Of a stretch of DNA of 64,000 nucleotides, positions 1,534 to 63,137 are shown one piece after another. Numbering within the stretch: position 1 is the first letter of the stretch; each line of letters opens with the position of its first letter. The notes below the pieces were generated by a model, which searched no databases, had not been told where the DNA came from, and was given only the letters and a program-made list of their open reading frames with translations. The translations under genes and the position numbers were made by a program. This stretch comes from Trichosphaerium sp. ATCC 40318 (taxonomy: Eukaryota > Protista > Tubulinea): positions 1 to 64,000 of the forward strand of contig JALMLS010000271.1 in assembly GCA_038496445.1 (NCBI GenBank), read 5' to 3'.

Positions 1534-2181
1534 CGTGGTTTGATAATGTCACTGCTGTATCTATAGTTAGAAGATTGGATGGTTCTCAAGTTTCCTTGGA
1601 TTATGGTACTGTGGGTTCAGAGGAGTGGCTCTTTAAGCGTAGACAGCGCAATACTCCTGCATTTGCTATTGGTCATGGTATAGATGGTTTCAACAGAGAT
1701 GGTACCGTTATTCTATCCAAGCATTTGGCTCCTTCACTCAAAAAGCGTAAATCAAAACAAATTAAACGAATTGGATTTATTGAGTGGGAAGACGATTACA
1801 ATTAATTAATATACATGACGCTGGCACGTGGCCCTCCAAAATTTGTGAGAACAAATTTCGGAGCCTGATTGGGCAAGCTGGGATGAGTCTAGTTATTGGT
1901 TCTTTTCTCTTTTCTTTTTATTTTATGCTTTAATTTTACAAAAATTTATTTGTTCTTTTAATGGCACTATATTCCTCTTATTTTCTTATTATTCAATCAT
2001 TTATTGTACTACGCTGGCACGTGGCCCTCCAAAATTTGTGAGAACAAATTTCGGAGCCTGATCGGGCAAGCTGGGACGGTGATTTTTTTCGATGTAATTA
2101 TCTTGTAATTATTATTATGAATAAAGTGAGGGCTACGGCGCTCGCCTCTTGTTTGAAAAAAAAAAAAAAAAAAAAAAAAAA
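1534..2181 (+). mobile_element. 5'-truncated retroposed insertion (non-LTR element 3' end or retrocopied RNA)
   Basis: Exact 17-bp direct repeat ATACTGTGGTACAAACC at 1517-1533 and 2182-2198. Poly(A) run 2156-2182. AATAAA at ~2120. The insert carries the end of an ORF (stop at 1805) and a 3' UTR. Confidence 0.9.
1818..2076 (+). repeat. Two 66-nt direct repeats (1818-1883, 2011-2076) with hairpin potential inside the retroposed 3' UTR
   Basis: The copies differ by one base (GATT/GATC, in a loop). They contain AAATTTGT-GAGA-ACAAATTT closed by CTCC/GGAG, and GCCT-GATY-GGGC. Confidence 0.9.
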
Positions 2182-2898
2182 ATACTGTGGTACAAACCGG
2201 TATATTTTTTATTACAATACCTGTTCGTCTTGGCTATGTGTACCATATCACAAAAGAAAAACCTGACCAACAAAGGGTGTCTTGGTCATCAATCGCTAGT
2301 ATAAGAAAAAGTAGCTGAACTCTTTGGCGTTTTTGTATTCTGTGTATAGTGCTGTCTATATTACAGATGCTTCTCCGACAAATGAAGGTGATCTTGTTTA
2401 CGACACGCCTTTAGCCTCCAAACTTGGCAAAATACAACAAGATCTTCCTGTAAAGATGTAGTTGTTCTTTGCCAACAAGCAAGCCTCTACTTTCTACTAC
2501 GGAGTCAAGAAGGCGTGTGCTATACACTCTAGTTTTTCCTGTTCTGTTACAGATTAAATAATTACTGGTACAAACAATCTCGCTTTTAGCACGTGCCTTC
2601 AAAGAATGCTAGATGGAGTCATAATTGTAATTTGCGACATTAAAACTGATGTGCCTTTGAAGTATGGTTGTGTTAAAGTTATAATAATAGATGTCATTAC
2701 ACTCAACAGTATGTGTTCACTATGGTTTCCAAAGTAGTTCAGAATTCGCAGCAAGGCAATTCAAATAATTATTAGTTGTTCTTTATCGTTTTATTTACAA
2801 GTGTTTTTGTTTATGTACATTTCTCTTCTGGTGTGGCATGTTGCAAAAATTGAAGAGCTTCGAAGTCCCTAATCCGAAAGGAGCATATGGCTTTGAAT

Positions 2899-4122
2899 TT
2901 AGTACATGTATACATCATCATCAGCAGGTGTAACCCACATTAATTGGTCGCAGTAATAATCATTGTACAGAGAAGGAAGCTCTTGAGTATTGTCAAGATA
3001 TAGCTGTTTCTTTCTTAGTTGTTCGTTTTCATATTGAAGCTGTAGGTTCCTCTCTTCCAAAGACTGTAAACAACACACATTATTGAAGACATCGCCTTTT
3101 GAAACACGTGTTAATTGAATTGTTATGAAAATGTTTGTGACCAAAAAAAAAAGAAACACAAGATAAGAAAAAAAAGTGTACCTCTATGATCCTGTGTAAG
3201 TCCGTTTTCGTTTGGAGTGAACGCTGTACAATACACTTCATCGTTTATGATGTTATGCTGGGTGTGGTTTGGAGGTGAGTTGTAGTAAAAGTCCATATCT
3301 TCAGTATCAGGTGAAGAAGAAAGAGAAGAAGTATCAGAATAGTTGCCATTAAGTTGAGGATCAAAATAGACTCCGCCGAAGATGTTAGAGTTGCTGATAT
3401 TAGCAATGTGGTACAAGTCTTCATTTCTAACAGATTCAACAACATGTGAGAAACCTAGACACAAACAGCGTGAGCACAGAACGCCAGTAAAAACAATTCC
3501 AACTGGACTTTTTCTGTCATACCTGATACTTTGTGATGGCATGTGTTTGCGTAATCTGATGCATGATACGATCTGCTCATATCAGGTCCTCGCGGATGGA
3601 ATATAACCAACTCGTTTAGCTTTCTCATACCAATCATACACTCTTTGAACTTATTCCTTCGTCTCTAAACAGAAAAACAATTAGTTTCATGACTTTATTG
3701 TTGATATTACTCAAACTAGAAGCCTTCGAAAGACATCTAATATTATACGTACATGTAGTGTAGAGCGTATACAGAAGTCATAGGCGTTTCTAATTGTTGT
3801 TGCGGTAGATTTTCCATGTGATAGAAAAAGTTCTGTACTTTCTTTGCTGAGGTACACAAGCCATCCTTTCATTGGTGTATTATCCATAAAGTGAACCTAA
3901 ACAATCTCTTTTAGTCCAAGAAATACTTTAAAAGTAACCCATAAATGAAGCCAGCGACAAAAGAAATAGGAAAGGACTGATTGCCGGTAATATCTGGAGT
4001 TTTTTGGGGAAAGAAAAAAGTCGAAAAAGATTTACGTTACTTACGACACAAGGCTTTGAATATTGAATATTAGGTAACGCTATTGTTAAAAAGTGTTGTA
4101 GTAAAGTGGTGCGTCTCGACAT
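2899..4122 (-). CDS. Hypothetical protein, 277 aa, 5 exons (4045-4122, 3753-3896, 3523-3664, 3182-3454, 2899-3095), family copy A
   Basis: All four introns are GT-AG and phase-compatible (834 nt total). Exons are conserved with paralogs at 5459 and 7646 while introns diverge. Confidence 0.8.
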
Positions 4123-5458
4123 TTGATGTTAACTGTGTGAAGTTTGTATTTTTTGACAGCTTACTTTTTTTGTTTTGTGACTTTGTTCACATTCTCTATT
4201 GGTCGTAACATAACAACGAACTAACGTGCAGTAAATAGAGGGATATAAGTGCATAAATAATACCAGTATGTCAATGACGGAATGTATCTTGTAGAAAGGG
4301 AGCTACGCCAAAAAATATCTGAAACAAAATTCTCAACACGTGTTCAGAGAACGAGTTCTCAGAACGCGACAAACATAAAATACGCTCTTTAACATACGAA
4401 CGGGTTTGATTCATGTTATTTTCTCAATATGAGTAAGATATGGATTTAATATGTGTTTTTAAGCGAAATTGAGAGCACAACTTTTTTGGTTTGGGGCGTT
4501 TTGTTGTCGTCATAAGTGAATATCCTGGATTACACTGTAGCTCGATCTGCATCAACTATAGATTATATAACAGGTATTGACATAAGTGTGGACAATCTAT
4601 ATTCATCATGGGAGTATAACGTCTTTACATGAATGAACATTGAGTATGTTTTTGTTGTATAGAAATGTTTTACATCTCCACTAGTGTACTGCCATTTGTT
4701 AGTGTATTAGCGATGTTTGAAGCCTTATAAAGCGAATTGCTTTAAGATACACACGTGATTAGAGGTTATGTACTCAATCCTTGTTCAAAGAAGTATGTCT
4801 TGTTCTCCGTTTAACTCTAATAGTATATCTTAGAATGAAAAAGTAAAAACAAGACTGTATGAAGTTTTAAAAGTGTTGCTGTAATTCGCAGAAATCTAAT
4901 TTTTTTCAAACAACGACAGAGAAGCAGCCTAATCACACTATTGTACTCATTTGCCATTAATCTTTTTAAATCTCAACAGCGTCAACGCACTCAAAAAAAC
5001 GCTTAAAAAAGTCGAGGTGTTTACAGACATTGGTCAACTTGAACAACTAGATGTCATGAATATACACTAGCGTGCACTTACGCCCAATGCCCATTATATA
5101 ATCTACAGAGAATTCAGATTGAGCTACAGTGTAATCCGGGATAATCACTTATGACGACAACAAAACGCCCCAAACCAAAAAAGTTGTACTCTCAATTTCG
5201 CTTAAAAACCCATTCGTATCTTGAGAACTCAACTTTTGATTTTACTCATTCGCATGTTAAGAGAGCGTGTTTTTAGTTGCCATATTCTGAGTGCTCGTTC
5301 TCTGAACACGTGTTGAGAATTTTACTTCAGATATTTTTTGGTGTAGCTCCCTTTCTACAAGGTACAGTCCGCCATTGCCATACTGTATTAGTTATGTGTT
5401 GAGATAAACAAAAAAATTAGACTGTCAAAAAATACAAACTTCACACAGTTAACATCAA

Positions 5459-57650: not shown

Positions 57651-58211
57651 CTTAGCACTCTCGCTTGCCTCCAATAATCCATGTTAGAACCAGCAATATC
57701 GCTGTGCCAATGAATGCGGTTGGCTTTTGGATGCTAGCCAACTAATCATGCATCACACATTGCTGTTGCTAAGATGCCAAAATCAGTTGCCGTCTTACAC
57801 AGTTATGTGGATGGTTGTTTGTTGCATGTTACGTTTTAAAGGGTATCGCACTGCGCAATACAACTGTTTGGTAAGCTGCTTTTCAAAACAATTGTGCTTT
57901 TGTACACGCACCAAACCCGAAATACCCGCAATCTTCACAACTTAACACTTGCTACTTTGATGTACTAACACATGTTTTTTATTGACGATTGAACAAAAAG
58001 CCAAGGTGGTAAGTCATAGTACTATGCTTAATTTGTACTGAATACCCATTGACTCAATAGACTCTTTTGTACCCAGGACAACCAAATTTTGAAGCACAGT
58101 TTTAGAGCTTTTAAAGTCTCAAACAAGTGTGTTATACAAAAGAATTTATTTTGGTTTTTTTTTTTGGTTCGGAGAAAAGTTTTTCTATTTCACATGCTAG
58201 GTTACTTGTTA

Positions 58212-61200
58212 TTAAGTTCCTGAAGTATGTATATCCCCTCCTTTCCTATTCGTTTTGACTTCAACTATGTACTTTAGAAACACGTGCTCATCTAAGCAAT
58301 AATGAGTTAAGTAACCAAAAATGTTACGTAAAATAAAATAAGAAAAAATTAAGAACACTGCAATGATTTGTGCTTGCAGCACTGCGAACAGGATGTGGTA
58401 TTTTTGTAGTTATTTGATGATAATTACAACTATACAACTATCTTTAAAGTTTTATATTGCGTGTTATAGAACAGAGCTCTAACACTAATTTTTGTTCAAG
58501 TAAACAACTAACTAAACATACCTCTCGGAACAACAAGTTCATCAAAAAGTTCACCGTCTTTCTTTGCTGCAAAAATATCTTCTATAGGTTTACCTTGTCT
58601 ATCAACTATAAAACAAGGGGTTAGTTTACAACATTCAAATGAAGGCATTGAACTCACCTAATACATAATGACTTTGATAACCTTCTTTTATATCTTTCAA
58701 TAAAAGAGACTTTGAATCCGCATAAGGATCTTCTACTACAGGATATGTATTACCCATTATCACGTATGTTATTGCTACAAACATTGTAGCAGCTGGTTCA
58801 AATAAAGCAGCATATGTTAACGACGTCTAAGCACAAGTTAGTTGTGAGAAAAAAAAAGGAAACGAAAAAAGAAAGAGTTTATGAACGTTTGCTTCAAAAA
58901 GTATGAAACAAGTAATGTTTTCTACACACGCTCAATCATCGCGATATAAATCGAATTTTATGGACATACCGTAAAATAAATACCTGTCCCATACCAAGCA
59001 CCATCTATAAAAAAATGAGAAAAAAAAATCGTTGCTAATGCTTTCTAATCTAACACAAAGTAAAAAAGTTCTTGTTGAACTTCAAGTATTCAATATCATT
59101 AATTAAAGCGTATTAAAGAAAATAAAAATAACGATTGTTTTGACAAAGTCTTGTAATTGGTAGAAAAGCGCACTGAAGCGAGAAGTAGAAAAAACGAAGC
59201 ACTTCGACTCTTCTTGGTATAAAATAACTGTTCATTACTTACCTTGGTGTTCTATAGGTCTGAAACCACGTGCACAAGTTGTTATTATATCAGCTTTATC
59301 AATAACATGAGCAGCAACCATAACTTTTACAGAATTCTGTGAATTCCACTCAAGAATACCAAACTTCGCATCTGCATGTGCCATGACAGCAATACGCTTT
59401 GAAGATCTTGTCTTAACCCATGCGTTTTGCATATAAGTCTCTGGATCTGATTCATGACAATCCACAAGATCATGAAGAGTATCTGAAAATCTCTTATACA
59501 TTTTCGAATTATCTATCGCCCATGCGTTTACAATCACGTGATTACTTCCATCCATTGAATTTAATAAATCTTGTAACCTTTTTTGAAAAAAAAATCATGT
59601 GACTATCACGTGGGAAATAAGTCGAAAAGAAATAAGTACCTATTGAGTTCTTTTAATGCTGTAAAATCATTTTTCAATGCAGGTCCATTTAAGTGTAGTT
59701 GAGTGTAACTATTAGTCTTGTCTTTTATTACCATCCATTCTTGTACTTGATAAAGCTCTGGTGAAAAATGAAATAATTGCTGTTGCATAGACATCGCTTT
59801 ACCAAAATCAACGACTAGTACACTCGAAGTTAACAAAAAAAAAATAAATCATTTATGTCAAAAAAAAATTGGAGACAAGATTACCAGATGACGCACTGTT
59901 GCTTACTGTGGACCTTCCCCTATCTCTTAAGAGGAAAAATATTAATAAAAATAAACCACCAAGACCTAACACTAAAGCTAGAACGATAATAATAACCAGA
60001 TAAGTCGTATTAAACCCTCCACCATCGTCACTAGGACCAACAGCAGATGCAGTAGGAACTACAGCTGTAACATTTGAAGGTGCTTCAGTAGGCGCCTCTG
60101 TAAGTGCTTCAGTCGGTGCTGATACAGGTTGTTCCGTAGGTTCTTCAGTTGGCGGTGTGGTCGTCGGTGCGAGTGTGGTTGGAGGAGGGCTCACTTCGAT
60201 TAACGAAGGTGTTGATTCTTCACAAAAACTGGGCGTTCCAAATCTGGATTATTTAGTTAAATAAGCGGCAATGGAAAATATAATTTTGTGGTCATTTGGT
60301 GTACCTGTTCACGCCTTCGTTTGAGTACGAAAATGTAAACGCTCTTCTATCTTCTGCAATACCCCATAACGTAAAATTGCCAGGCTCTTCCCAGCACACT
60401 AAAAACAACATTACGAATACTTTAACTTTAGTTATAAGACAAACACTGTTGTATCACGTGGTATCAATACGTAAATCACTAGCAAGCGTGTCTTGATATT
60501 CATGGGTGTAAAAAAGAACACAACTACAAAATTCTGTTTGATGGTACCTTCCCAGGAACAAGTCAAAACGCTGTCAGTAGGTAACATAGCATTACCAACT
60601 ACTACAGCATAGGCATCTCTAATGATCATGACATCCTATTTAAGTAGATAACACCATAAATATACAGCCTTATAAACGCTTATACTTACTTCTATATTGC
60701 ACGTGACTGAGCCATCTGTTACAAAACCAGTTGGAGTTGGAAAAGTAAATCCTAAAGGAATTTCTTTTTCTGGCACTCTTGGAGGATTCATGGCATTGTA
60801 GGTTATCGTTGAACAGTCTCCTATTAACTCGTATTAAATTTAAAATAATTAAATATAATTTTACCAACTGTTAGCGATGTTCTTGGTTCTATCACGTGCC
60901 ATGCAACGACGTTTGACGAACAACAAAATTGTGAAATTGTAGCACTTTCATCCACTGTTAATTTAATCCTATCTACGCTTTGAAATACTCCCTGGTTGTC
61001 TGGTTCTAGGCATATATTGCTACAATACAGTGAATCAAAATTACATAAAATAGAAGCTGTGGAAGGAGTACTTTGTACCAGAATTTGCTTCGATTCCAAA
61101 AGACGACGTTGCCTTTAAGCCATCTGAATCCCATGCTTCGATTTGTATGTTATTAACATTACCGCCATTGTTATCTATTATAACGTCCCAACATGCTATA

Positions 61201-61666
61201 ATTATTTAAGTAAATACTAAAAAGTTCTACAATAATTATCGTGGGTACACGTGGTTAACGGACGCGACGCGAAAAGCGTCAACGTTCAAGTTTTTTCGAA
61301 AAAAGTTTGTTTTTTCTATTTTTTTGTAGTACCACAGCCGTTCGCATCAAGATTCTCGCCTCCTATATCAGTATACTCCCAAATACACTGACCACTATCT
61401 GGTGGAAACGACAAACACGTCAATCCATCCACGTGCGCACTAGAAGTCACGTTTTCTCCGGCGGGATCCATTGTACAACCCAAAACCCGAGATCCAATAA
61501 AATCTCCTTGTACAGCTTCTAAAGTAGTATTGGGACTTGCTCCTGTGCACAGTGCTGGCTCCTGAGCATTTGTAAATAAGTCCACAGCATAGGGAAGCGT
61601 CTGTCCCCGTATTGATTGTATACACAACCAAGCTACCAGAATAACAAAGGAAGCTTGGCCATTCAT
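58212..61666 (-). CDS. Single-pass receptor-like protein with a cytoplasmic PARP-like (ARTD) domain, 13 exons
   Basis: Signal peptide, Cys-containing ectodomain, P/T/E stalk, TM YLVIIIVLALVLGLGGLFLLIFFLL + RDRGR. Cytoplasmic VAAHVIDK...CARGF...DGAWYGTGIYFT|TSLTYA...VIMGNTYPVVE...GYQSHYV...FDELVV...VFLKYIVEV. All introns can be joined in frame. Confidence 0.85.
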
Positions 61667-62049
61667 TGTGTTTAGCTGAAGGTAAAGGCGCAGCCGGCGG
61701 AAAAACCAAAGTCTACGATATTCTCAAAGACGCCTATCACGTGCGCACCTAAATATATTAGAAGAAGGTTATCACGCAGGATATAGAAAGAGTGAATAAG
61801 ATCTTGATGTAAGACATTAATCTTGGATTAGAAGTCGCTTTAGAGCTTTGATAATACAAGAGCTATTCACTTACGTATAAATAGACGCTAATTAAAGCGT
61901 CTAAGGTCACTCAAACGCATTTCGAAAGAGGACACCGGAGTTTTCGTAACTTGAAGAAATACGACTTTTTTTTTGGTGAAGTTGGCTTTTTTTTCACTTC
62001 AAAAAAGGCAATATTTTGTACAAGCATCACTGGGTAACGTACAAGCACT

Positions 62050-63137
62050 ATGGCTATCACATGGCAGACAGTTATGAATTTTGTAAAGCTCCTTGAGATT
62101 ACAAAGGGCAGAGATAAGTTCTCAAAGCTCCTACAGTACACTGCATGGGCTATACGCTGGTACCTGGTAAAATACCAACCAACCAGCAAAGAACTCGCAC
62201 AACGATTTCAAAACTTTAGAATGGGCGCTGGTGGTGCGCGTAAACTCTTCAGATTGGGTCGCTCATTGGTTAACGTGCAAAAAATTCGATTGACCATAAT
62301 GGCCGCTTCCCATAAGCAATTCGAGGTCAGCGACGCACTGACTGTATTAAGCAACACTGGTTTGGCTGCTTTCTTTTTCTTCGACCATGGTGTTATGCTT
62401 AGCACCATGAAAGCCTTTGATTGGGATAAACAAGCATTGGTACGCCATTAAAGACGATTATTACGCACTTTTCTCAATTCAAAAATCTGTCAAAAACGCA
62501 GCTGATATCGTAGCTTGTCTGCGATTAATACCCCAAACACCCATATACATTCGTTAACACTATTAAACGATAATTTGTGCAATCCACTCACTTTATTCGT
62601 TAGAAGCAATTATCAGCACGTGGATGGTTTTGGGGACTCTTCTTTGGTTTATGTGGTATGCTATAGGCGTTTTGAATAATAATTAGGCACTTTTGCGTAT
62701 TTTGTGACAACTTTCTTGTCAAATCTTCACTACGCGAAACGCGTAGTTGGTTTTTTTTAATATTCATGTATCTTACGCGCGTAGCCGATATCACTGGATA
62801 CCAAAAAATTGCAGAACAGGACAGAGCAGCAAAATTACAAAAAAATTGGCTTCGTGTGAAGGAATTAAGTGCAAGAAGAGCCAAAATGCAGAGGCAGATT
62901 GTTGCGAGATTATGTGATCTTGTGGCTGCTTCAAGGGCTTCAGAAACTATCACCTTTTGGAGCGAGGTACGCTTTAACATTGATACGAAAAAAATTTGGG
63001 CAAAAAGCAGATTTCTCCTTTTAACCTCCATATCACTCATTCTTACTTTTGAAAAGGGTTTTGTCGCTGGGTGTGGTATACTCAGCGCCAGTATTGGCAT
63101 GTATGAACTCTGGCCAAAGAAAAAAGAGGCGCTTTAA
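62050..63137 (+). CDS. PEX11: Peroxisomal membrane protein PEX11 (4 exons)
   Basis: LLEITKGRDKFSKLLQY, ARKLFRLGR, FFFFDH, RLCDLVAA, GCGILSASIGMYELW. Confidence 0.9.

Follow-up and report, generated by a model that had tools for sequence, protein, structure and literature searches.

The stretch of DNA analyzed here (the window) comprises 64,000 nucleotides (nt) from the marine amoebozoan Trichosphaerium sp. ATCC 40318, whose genome has a G+C content of about 37% and short introns. On the minus strand, from an ATG at 61666 to a stop codon at 58212, lies a gene of 13 exons that join in one open frame, with GT-AG at all junctions. Its corrected coding sequence of 2,163 nt encodes 720 residues, in which an N-terminal leader, a Cys-rich region and a single transmembrane (TM) segment precede a PARP-type ADP-ribosyltransferase (ART) domain; this is referred to below as the receptor-type PARP gene. 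Its features are as follows:

58212..61666, minus strand: coding region of the receptor-type PARP gene, based on spliced contigs, a check of frame and phase, and identity to the transcriptome protein P0001
61666-61333, 61195-61072, 61019-60865, 60820-60690 and 60635-60548, minus strand: exons 1-5
60398-60305, 60243-59885, 59814-59640 and 59577-59243, minus strand: exons 6-9
59004-58970, 58826-58658, 58605-58522 and 58291-58212, minus strand: exons 10-13
61604..61666, minus strand: predicted signal peptide, residues 1-21, with the core FVILVAWLCI and likely cleavage after SIRG, from inspection and hydropathy only
60210..61603 (introns included, exons 1-7), minus strand: predicted ectodomain, residues 22-320, with 14 Cys and three N-glycosylation sequons
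60003..60209, minus strand: stalk rich in Pro, Thr, Ser, Glu and Ala, residues 321-389, with two sequons and a weak match to the Pfam PT repeat
59928..60002, minus strand: predicted single TM helix, residues 390-414, from hydropathy, followed by RDRGR and lying within exon 7
59765..59927 (intron 7 included), minus strand: juxtamembrane linker, residues 415-445, of low model confidence
58248..59764 (introns included, exons 8-13), minus strand: PARP-type ART domain, residues ~446-709, from Pfam, profiles and fold
59304..59309, minus strand: codons of His577, the first residue of the catalytic triad, and Val578, the His being aligned with that of HGT in PARP10 and PARP12
58976..58978, minus strand: codon of Tyr608 (GxGxYF) in exon 10, aligned to GKGxYF of PARP10, PARP12 and PARP13
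58538..58540, minus strand: codon of Glu689 (D-E-L-V-V), the third triad residue, just before the columns aligned to FVIF

Evidence for the gene structure came from transcript contigs of four public sequencing runs (X1, X4, X5 and X6) from three studies, which were compared with positions 58150-61750. All 12 introns are absent from spliced contigs, and each skipped stretch ends in CT..AC on the plus strand. A single X5 contig, 2,156 nt long, extends from position 61667 to approximately 58208, and thus contains ATG through stop in one spliced RNA; the ectodomain and the PARP part are therefore on the same mRNA. The original prediction, made from the sequence alone, had joined 13 exons in one frame between these gene ends, with a 35-nt exon at the coordinates given above. 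Sequence and transcripts bear out each of these points, and the start-to-stop mRNA contradicts the possibility, raised at the same time, that the ectodomain and the PARP part are separate genes.

The transcript contigs place intron 2 at 61071-61020, with exon 2 ending at 61072 and exon 3 starting at 61019, and they start the last exon at 58291. An initial exon model, with exon 3 starting at 61005 and the last exon at 58381 (743 residues), has an open frame but is contradicted by the transcripts. With the corrected last exon the protein ends in ...FDELVVPR-D-EHVFLKYIVEVK..., which fits the final PARP strands better than the C-terminus of the 58381 version. Exon 10, at 35 nt (58970-59004), encodes GAWYGTGIYFT, with its first codon completed by the last base of exon 9. 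Some variation in splicing was observed. Use of an alternative donor at 59897 (59885-59897) leads to in-frame loss of four residues, while a donor at 61079 (61072-61079), seen in one run, causes a frameshift with a stop at codon 155. Intron 12 (58292-58521) is covered by a low-depth unspliced contig, and its retention would end the protein at ...VVPRGMFS, before the last PARP strand.

An exhaustive HMMER search with exon 9 as the query returned three proteins. P0001 (720 residues) is identical to the corrected model over its full length, and P0004 (716 residues) is the product of the alternative donor at 59897; both are from the MMETSP0405 transcriptome of Trichosphaerium sp. ATCC 40318, so that the gene is expressed. 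The third match, P0003, was rejected as spurious (30 residues against a tandem repeat). No paralogue of P0001 was found in the 64-kb window by tblastn. The gene structure fits the mean intron and exon lengths, 75 bp and 154 bp, published for the Trichosphaerium draft genome, in a paper that nowhere mentions PARPs or ADP-ribosylation (PMC10521059). The gene is under purifying selection; among 16 strain or allele differences from the contigs that fall within the coding sequence, 15 are synonymous and one, T180A, is nonsynonymous. Only four of the 16 are in the cytoplasmic part, and all four are synonymous.

The layout of the protein resembles that of a receptor. By inspection and hydropathy, the hydrophobic core of the N-terminal leader spans 10 residues (7-16), and the residue at position -1 of the likely cleavage site (SIRG/Q) is small. 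Residues 390-414 are the only segment with a 19-residue Kyte-Doolittle value above 2 (peak 3.19). Three basic residues are found in the 15 positions after this segment and none in the 15 before it. Cys residues and sequons are also unevenly distributed, with 14 Cys and five sequons N-terminal of the TM segment and two Cys C-terminal of it. Pro, Thr, Ser, Glu and Ala make up 71% of stalk residues 321-386. The protein ends 11 residues past the PARP fold and has no C-terminal TM anchor. These features agree with the order of signal peptide, ectodomain, TM segment and cytoplasmic PARP domain put forward in the original prediction, and they suggest an orientation with the N-terminus outside and the PARP domain in the cytosol. 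This topology is further supported because relatives of the protein, described below, carry EGF_CA, FG-GAP or leucine-rich repeat (LRR) domains N-terminal of their TM segments. The ectodomain itself matches no Pfam family, and proteins of 396-1,260 residues include no relative of it. When residues 425-720 or residues 20-335 were used as queries, word-based homologue searches recovered only P0001, a feature search of the ESM Atlas with the ectodomain gave an uninformative score of 0.77, and self-BLAST detected no internal repeats in it.

Three lines of evidence identify the cytoplasmic domain as a PARP-family ART with the triad H577-Y608-E689: Pfam, profile comparisons and the predicted fold. 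On residues 425-720 of P0001 the Pfam family PF00644 scores 27.0 bits, just above its cut-off of 26.7, over profile positions 59-198 of 199 (E 3.7e-6). Pfam searches with individual exons gave no PARP match, because each exon holds too little of the domain, and a phmmer search of PDB sequences with the cytoplasmic part alone gave only noise. More sensitive comparisons were possible with P0002, a metagenomic protein of 434 residues with ankyrin repeats, which is 34% identical over 269 residues of the PARP module. A profile of these two sequences matched solved structures of PARP13/ZAP (E 4.7e-5), PARP10, PARP12 and PARP4, aligning the His with that of the PARP10 HGT and the tyrosine with GKGVYF. 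Searching with the same profile yielded 16 relatives, most of which are annotated with PF00644. In the resulting 17-sequence alignment there is no variation in the GxGxYF tyrosine, a second tyrosine, GYQSHY (a motif specific to the family) or the D-E of DELVV, and the 17-sequence profile matched PARP13 (E 1.9e-6), PARP12 (1.2e-5) and PARP10 (2.2e-5) in the PDB.

Structure prediction led to the same assignment. An AlphaFold model from the single sequence was discarded (predicted local distance difference test score, pLDDT, 32), and the model used was built with the alignment (pLDDT 77.6, predicted template modelling score 0.79). All 50 of the Foldseek matches listed for this model are catalytic domains of PARP1 or PARP3, with E values of about 3e-9. 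In VIA-align comparisons the highest score was for PARP13 (Z 16.8, 167 of 171 residues, root-mean-square deviation 2.8), followed by PARP15 (16.4), PARP10 (16.2), tankyrase 2 (16.1) and PARP4, PARP1 and PARP3 (~15). TASOR (15.0) and RCD1 (14.3) also scored well, and PARP16 was at 10.3, while non-PARP ARTs of the diphtheria-toxin type were below 6 and no ART of the cholera-toxin class was above 5. The ESM Atlas and viral fold libraries returned only PARP clusters. The viral matches, to PARP-like proteins from iridoviruses and giant viruses, are distant (11-16% identity) and no nearer than cellular PARPs, and there is thus no sign of a viral origin. Both the PF00644 check and the search for an ART fold that had been suggested for this domain were therefore positive. 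The nearest entries in the ESM Atlas are an unnamed PARP cluster (722 residues, 83 members) and a cluster that combines DUF285 with PARP (899 residues, 55 members). DUF285 typically occurs in surface proteins, and the latter cluster may therefore hold further surface-linked PARPs.

The four PARP motifs originally read as an H-Y-E (His-Tyr-Glu) layout are present, with His, Tyr and Glu at the aligned triad positions: AAHV begins at residue 575, GTGIYF (within GAWYGTGIYFT) at 604, SLTYA at 612 and FDELVV at 687. Glu689 is assigned to the third triad position because the stretch after it aligns with FVIF of PARP12 and PARP10. PARP10, PARP12 and PARP15 have Ile or Leu at this position, the residue being Ile in PARP10 and PARP12. 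Residues were counted over 45 sequences that cover the catalytic core. Tyr608 and Glu689 are invariant (45/45), and the first triad position is His in 33 and Gln in nine. The Trichosphaerium module is grouped with P0002 (support 99) in a maximum-likelihood tree from a quick search.

Searched with the family alignment, metagenome contigs yielded 80 loci, which come from samples of 32-60% G+C, and the open frame was extended around each of them. Upstream frame was sufficient for assessment at 27 loci, and at 15 of these a strong hydrophobic segment adjoins the PARP module; the other 12 are soluble fusions. Receptor-type PARPs therefore constitute a family in which one TM segment precedes the module. 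Several of these proteins have recognizable Pfam domains N-terminal of the TM segment. L002, L003 and L005 carry FG-GAP repeats with calcium-binding EGF (EGF_CA) and cEGF domains, L016 carries EGF domains, and L021 and L022 carry LRRs; in L002 at least 1,282 residues and 93 Cys precede the TM segment. PF00644 was found C-terminal of the TM segment in L002, L005, L016 and L022; for L003 and L021 the tblastn match is the only evidence of the module. Among the 15 TM-linked members the first triad position is His in 13 (11 of them as H-G), and Tyr and Glu are present in all 15. TM-linked modules also cluster in the tree, with 14 of 16 in one half and three label changes, compared with 8.2 in shuffles, none of 500 being as low. 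Taken as conceptual translations, these sequences present ectodomain-TM-PARP as a recurrent architecture with exchanged ectodomains, and the Trichosphaerium gene is a divergent member of this uncharacterized receptor-like PARP family.

Other loci from the same scan have different arrangements. L025, L033, L034, L035, L039, L049, L051 and L063 are soluble fusions in which the module ends a long frame, preceded by 400-750 residues that include no TM segment. A poly(A) run terminates L049, indicating that some of the metagenome contigs are complementary DNA. In L005, two overlapping long plus-strand frames (1-1854 and 1748-4894) precede and contain the FG-GAP/EGF-TM-PARP protein, and a larger ectodomain is probably hidden by a frameshift or an intron. 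L006, L010, L013, L024 and L041, all from sample Ga0154020, form a tight group of near-identical short sequences with little beyond a TM anchor before the module, and L010 and L013 have an N-terminal hydrophobic leader as well; one organism seems to carry these minimal membrane-anchored PARPs as a multi-copy family.

The best profile and fold matches of the Trichosphaerium domain are the clade-3 proteins PARP13/ZAP, PARP12, PARP10 and PARP15, together with tankyrase. The GxGxYF tyrosine and the second tyrosine are as far apart as in PARP12 and PARP13, and the C-terminal strand pattern (E/I)-hydrophobic-V-V-F...Q..P is common to the Trichosphaerium domain, clade-3 PARPs and tankyrase. Unlike clade-3 PARPs, the Trichosphaerium subfamily has the invariant GYQSHY and, in the model, a helical insert of ~60 residues before the His strand. 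The partner domains also differ, since PARP13, PARP12, PARP10, PARP15 and tankyrase are soluble proteins with zinc-finger, WWE, macro or ankyrin/SAM domains. To our knowledge, every well-studied eukaryotic PARP is soluble except PARP16, which is tail-anchored in the endoplasmic reticulum (ER). The original prediction made a similar statement for characterized PARPs, and it is nearly right; however, a 2014 survey by Perina et al. lists a PARP12-like protein of a sponge in which a TM segment is N-terminal and, in one clause, notes H_lectin and transmembrane domains in clade-3 PARPs of Rhizaria (PMC4245714). These sponge and Rhizarian proteins, compared here by description only, may share their kind of architecture with the Trichosphaerium protein; the survey mentions them in single clauses, without topology, a receptor reading or a family analysis. 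A literature search for transmembrane PARPs or cytoplasmic PARP domains found no description of such receptors, although its coverage was limited and absence from it is no proof.

PARP16 is the closest precedent for a membrane-bound PARP with a cytosolic catalytic domain. Its triad is H-Y-Y, as against H-Y-E here, and its fold match to the Trichosphaerium domain is weaker (Z 10.3 vs 16-17 for PARP13, PARP15 and PARP10). According to a 2025 review, PARP16 is the only member of the mammalian PARP family that is a transmembrane mono-ART, and its 23-residue luminal tail is required for stimulated cytosolic activity (PMC12377720), which implies signaling across the membrane in that protein. Like PARP16 (ARTD15), the Trichosphaerium protein would place its PARP catalytic domain on the cytosolic face of a membrane with one TM helix (PMC12377720, PMC4245714). 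Unlike PARP16, in which the TM helix is C-terminal, it has the TM helix N-terminal of the catalytic domain, behind a signal peptide and ~370 predicted extracytoplasmic residues.

There are also parallels with the receptor kinases, receptor guanylyl cyclases, receptor tyrosine phosphatases and LRR receptor kinases, all of which combine a signal peptide, a modular ectodomain, one TM segment and a cytoplasmic enzyme. EGF, LRR and integrin-like ectodomain modules are a feature of the metagenomic relatives, where they are shuffled on a conserved chassis as in enzyme-linked receptors. Enzyme-linked receptors that have a kinase, phosphatase or cyclase as their output are known; unlike these, the Trichosphaerium protein has a predicted NAD+ (nicotinamide adenine dinucleotide)-using ART of the PARP type on the cytoplasmic side. 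The ecto-ARTs (ARTC1-5, of the cholera-toxin-like class) are likewise membrane-associated ADP-ribosyltransferases, but their R-S-E (Arg-Ser-Glu) domain is extracellular and is either glycosylphosphatidylinositol-anchored or secreted, whereas the domain described here is of the H-Y-E type and would lie on the cytoplasmic side of the TM segment.

These comparisons suggest a model in which the protein is a type I single-pass receptor whose ectodomain controls ADP-ribosylation by a cytosolic PARP domain. The signal peptide would send the Cys-rich, glycosylated ectodomain and its mucin-like stalk outside the cell or into a lumen, one helix would cross the membrane, and the H-Y-E PARP domain would face the cytosol, where NAD+ is available. 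In the mechanism that we consider most likely, binding or clustering of the ectodomain would then bring cytoplasmic domains together or alter their exposure, such that the PARP domains mono-ADP-ribosylate themselves or membrane-proximal proteins, and a signal is passed across the membrane much as receptor kinases do with phosphate. Ligand-activated signaling or defense, as put forward in the original prediction, may be the function. We consider this the best overall explanation of the locus, and give it about an even chance of being correct. A broader proposal is possible but doubtful: that receptor ADP-ribosyltransferases are a real and widespread signaling class of microbial eukaryotes, in which ectodomains of several kinds (integrin-like FG-GAP with EGF, LRR, and orphan Cys-rich domains like that of Trichosphaerium) would sense external ligands, prey or pathogens and activate a cytoplasmic PARP domain that either writes ADP-ribose on membrane-proximal targets or burns NAD+. 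ADP-ribosylation would then be a signaling currency of the plasma membrane in parallel to receptor phosphorylation.

Several observations weigh against the receptor model, and some of them favor a different function for the same architecture. The signal peptide and TM segment of the Trichosphaerium protein were called from hydropathy alone, and those of the relatives from a hydropathy threshold applied to conceptual frames. The tree came from a quick search and has a weak backbone (support 85). The PF00644 match is borderline, the whole protein scoring 23.5 bits, under the cut-off. Since the ectodomain has neither relatives nor a family, a role in ligand binding is a guess. Moreover, the H-V in place of the usual H-G, pointed out in the original prediction, is correct and is peculiar to this gene: the residue after the first triad position is Gly in 38 of the 45 sequences and Ala in five, and Val578 occurs only in Trichosphaerium. 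The Trichosphaerium module is also on the second-longest terminal branch of the tree (1.83, compared with a median of 0.31). Val578 concerns activity, not homology, and together with the long branch it makes changed or lost activity in the Trichosphaerium member possible. The protein could thus be a pseudo-enzyme receptor that has the same architecture but has lost transferase activity, its PARP domain serving as a scaffold or as a module that binds NAD+, ADP-ribose or protein, as in PARP13, TASOR and plant RCD1/SRO. In its favor, the top match in both sequence and structure is the inactive PARP13, which has Ala at the Val578 position in the profile alignment, and the scores of the pseudo-PARPs TASOR and RCD1 are nearly equal. 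On the other hand, the His, both Tyr and the Glu have been kept despite the long branch, and the differences in the cytoplasmic part are all synonymous, though few. In active PARPs the backbone of the Gly after the catalytic His holds nicotinamide, and in PARP1 this contact is made via backbone atoms, which are present in any residue. Loss of activity is a serious alternative, albeit a rather unlikely one.

Alternatively, the protein could be a constitutive membrane-anchored enzyme, with an N-terminal part that serves for sorting or is a cell-coat glycoprotein of structural or adhesive function, and a PARP domain that modifies local trafficking or cytoskeletal proteins without a ligand, as PARP16 does with proteins of the ER and ER exit sites. 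An orphan ectodomain with a mucin-like stalk is consistent with this idea, as are five metagenomic loci (L006, L011, L013, L024 and L041) with little or no ectodomain in the open frame and just a TM anchor before the module, and PARP16 sets a precedent for an anchored PARP (PMC12377720). However, other relatives bear modules that typically bind ligands or matrix (FG-GAP, EGF_CA and LRR), with ectodomains of up to more than 1,200 residues, and exchange of ectodomains on a conserved TM-PARP chassis is the pattern of a receptor family. Even PARP16 needs its luminal tail for stimulation (PMC12377720). We regard a constitutive anchored enzyme as unlikely. An artefact, in which a chimeric gene model or an assembly error has fused the gene of a secreted or membrane glycoprotein to that of an unrelated soluble PARP, is extremely improbable. 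The sole hints of it are the low-depth unspliced contig over intron 12 and the frameshifting donor at 61079. In contrast, exon 7 (60243-59885) encodes the stalk and the TM segment together with the last part of the ectodomain and the first residues on the cytoplasmic side, and contigs from independent studies join this exon to exons 8-13, thus excluding chimerism; the transcriptome isoforms P0001 and P0004 match exactly, and the same architecture is found in unrelated metagenomic contigs as single open frames.

Judged from the sequences compared here, ectodomain-TM-PARP proteins look like an apparently undescribed receptor class. Several uncultured organisms have the TM-PARP chassis behind ectodomains of the EGF/FG-GAP and LRR kinds, and the catalytic Tyr and Glu are invariant, a pattern that argues for a family of working enzymes. 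If the receptor model is correct, a receptor with ADP-ribosylation as its output would represent a new route of signaling across membranes. The Trichosphaerium gene would then be a concrete, expressed and testable example of such a receptor, rather than one odd gene.

The sequence around the gene has two further features. A divergent neighbor on the plus strand (62050-62448), ~380 nt upstream of the ATG, starts with a domain of PEX11, a protein of peroxisome biogenesis (Pfam E 1e-21). Between the two genes, in their common intergenic region, lies a short motif:

61736..61743, plus strand: ATCACGTG motif ~70 nt upstream of the ATG of the receptor-type PARP gene, of uncertain membership in that gene

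The octamer ATCACGTG has a CACGTG core, is often found as the palindrome ATCACGTGAT, and is present in 24 copies in the 64 kb, compared with 1.39 expected from shuffles. Copies near the gene, at 59533-59542, 59605-59612, 60453-60460, 60891-60898 and 61736-61743, lie in introns, in exons and upstream. The octamer may be a regulatory site similar to an E-box or G-box, or part of a small repeat.

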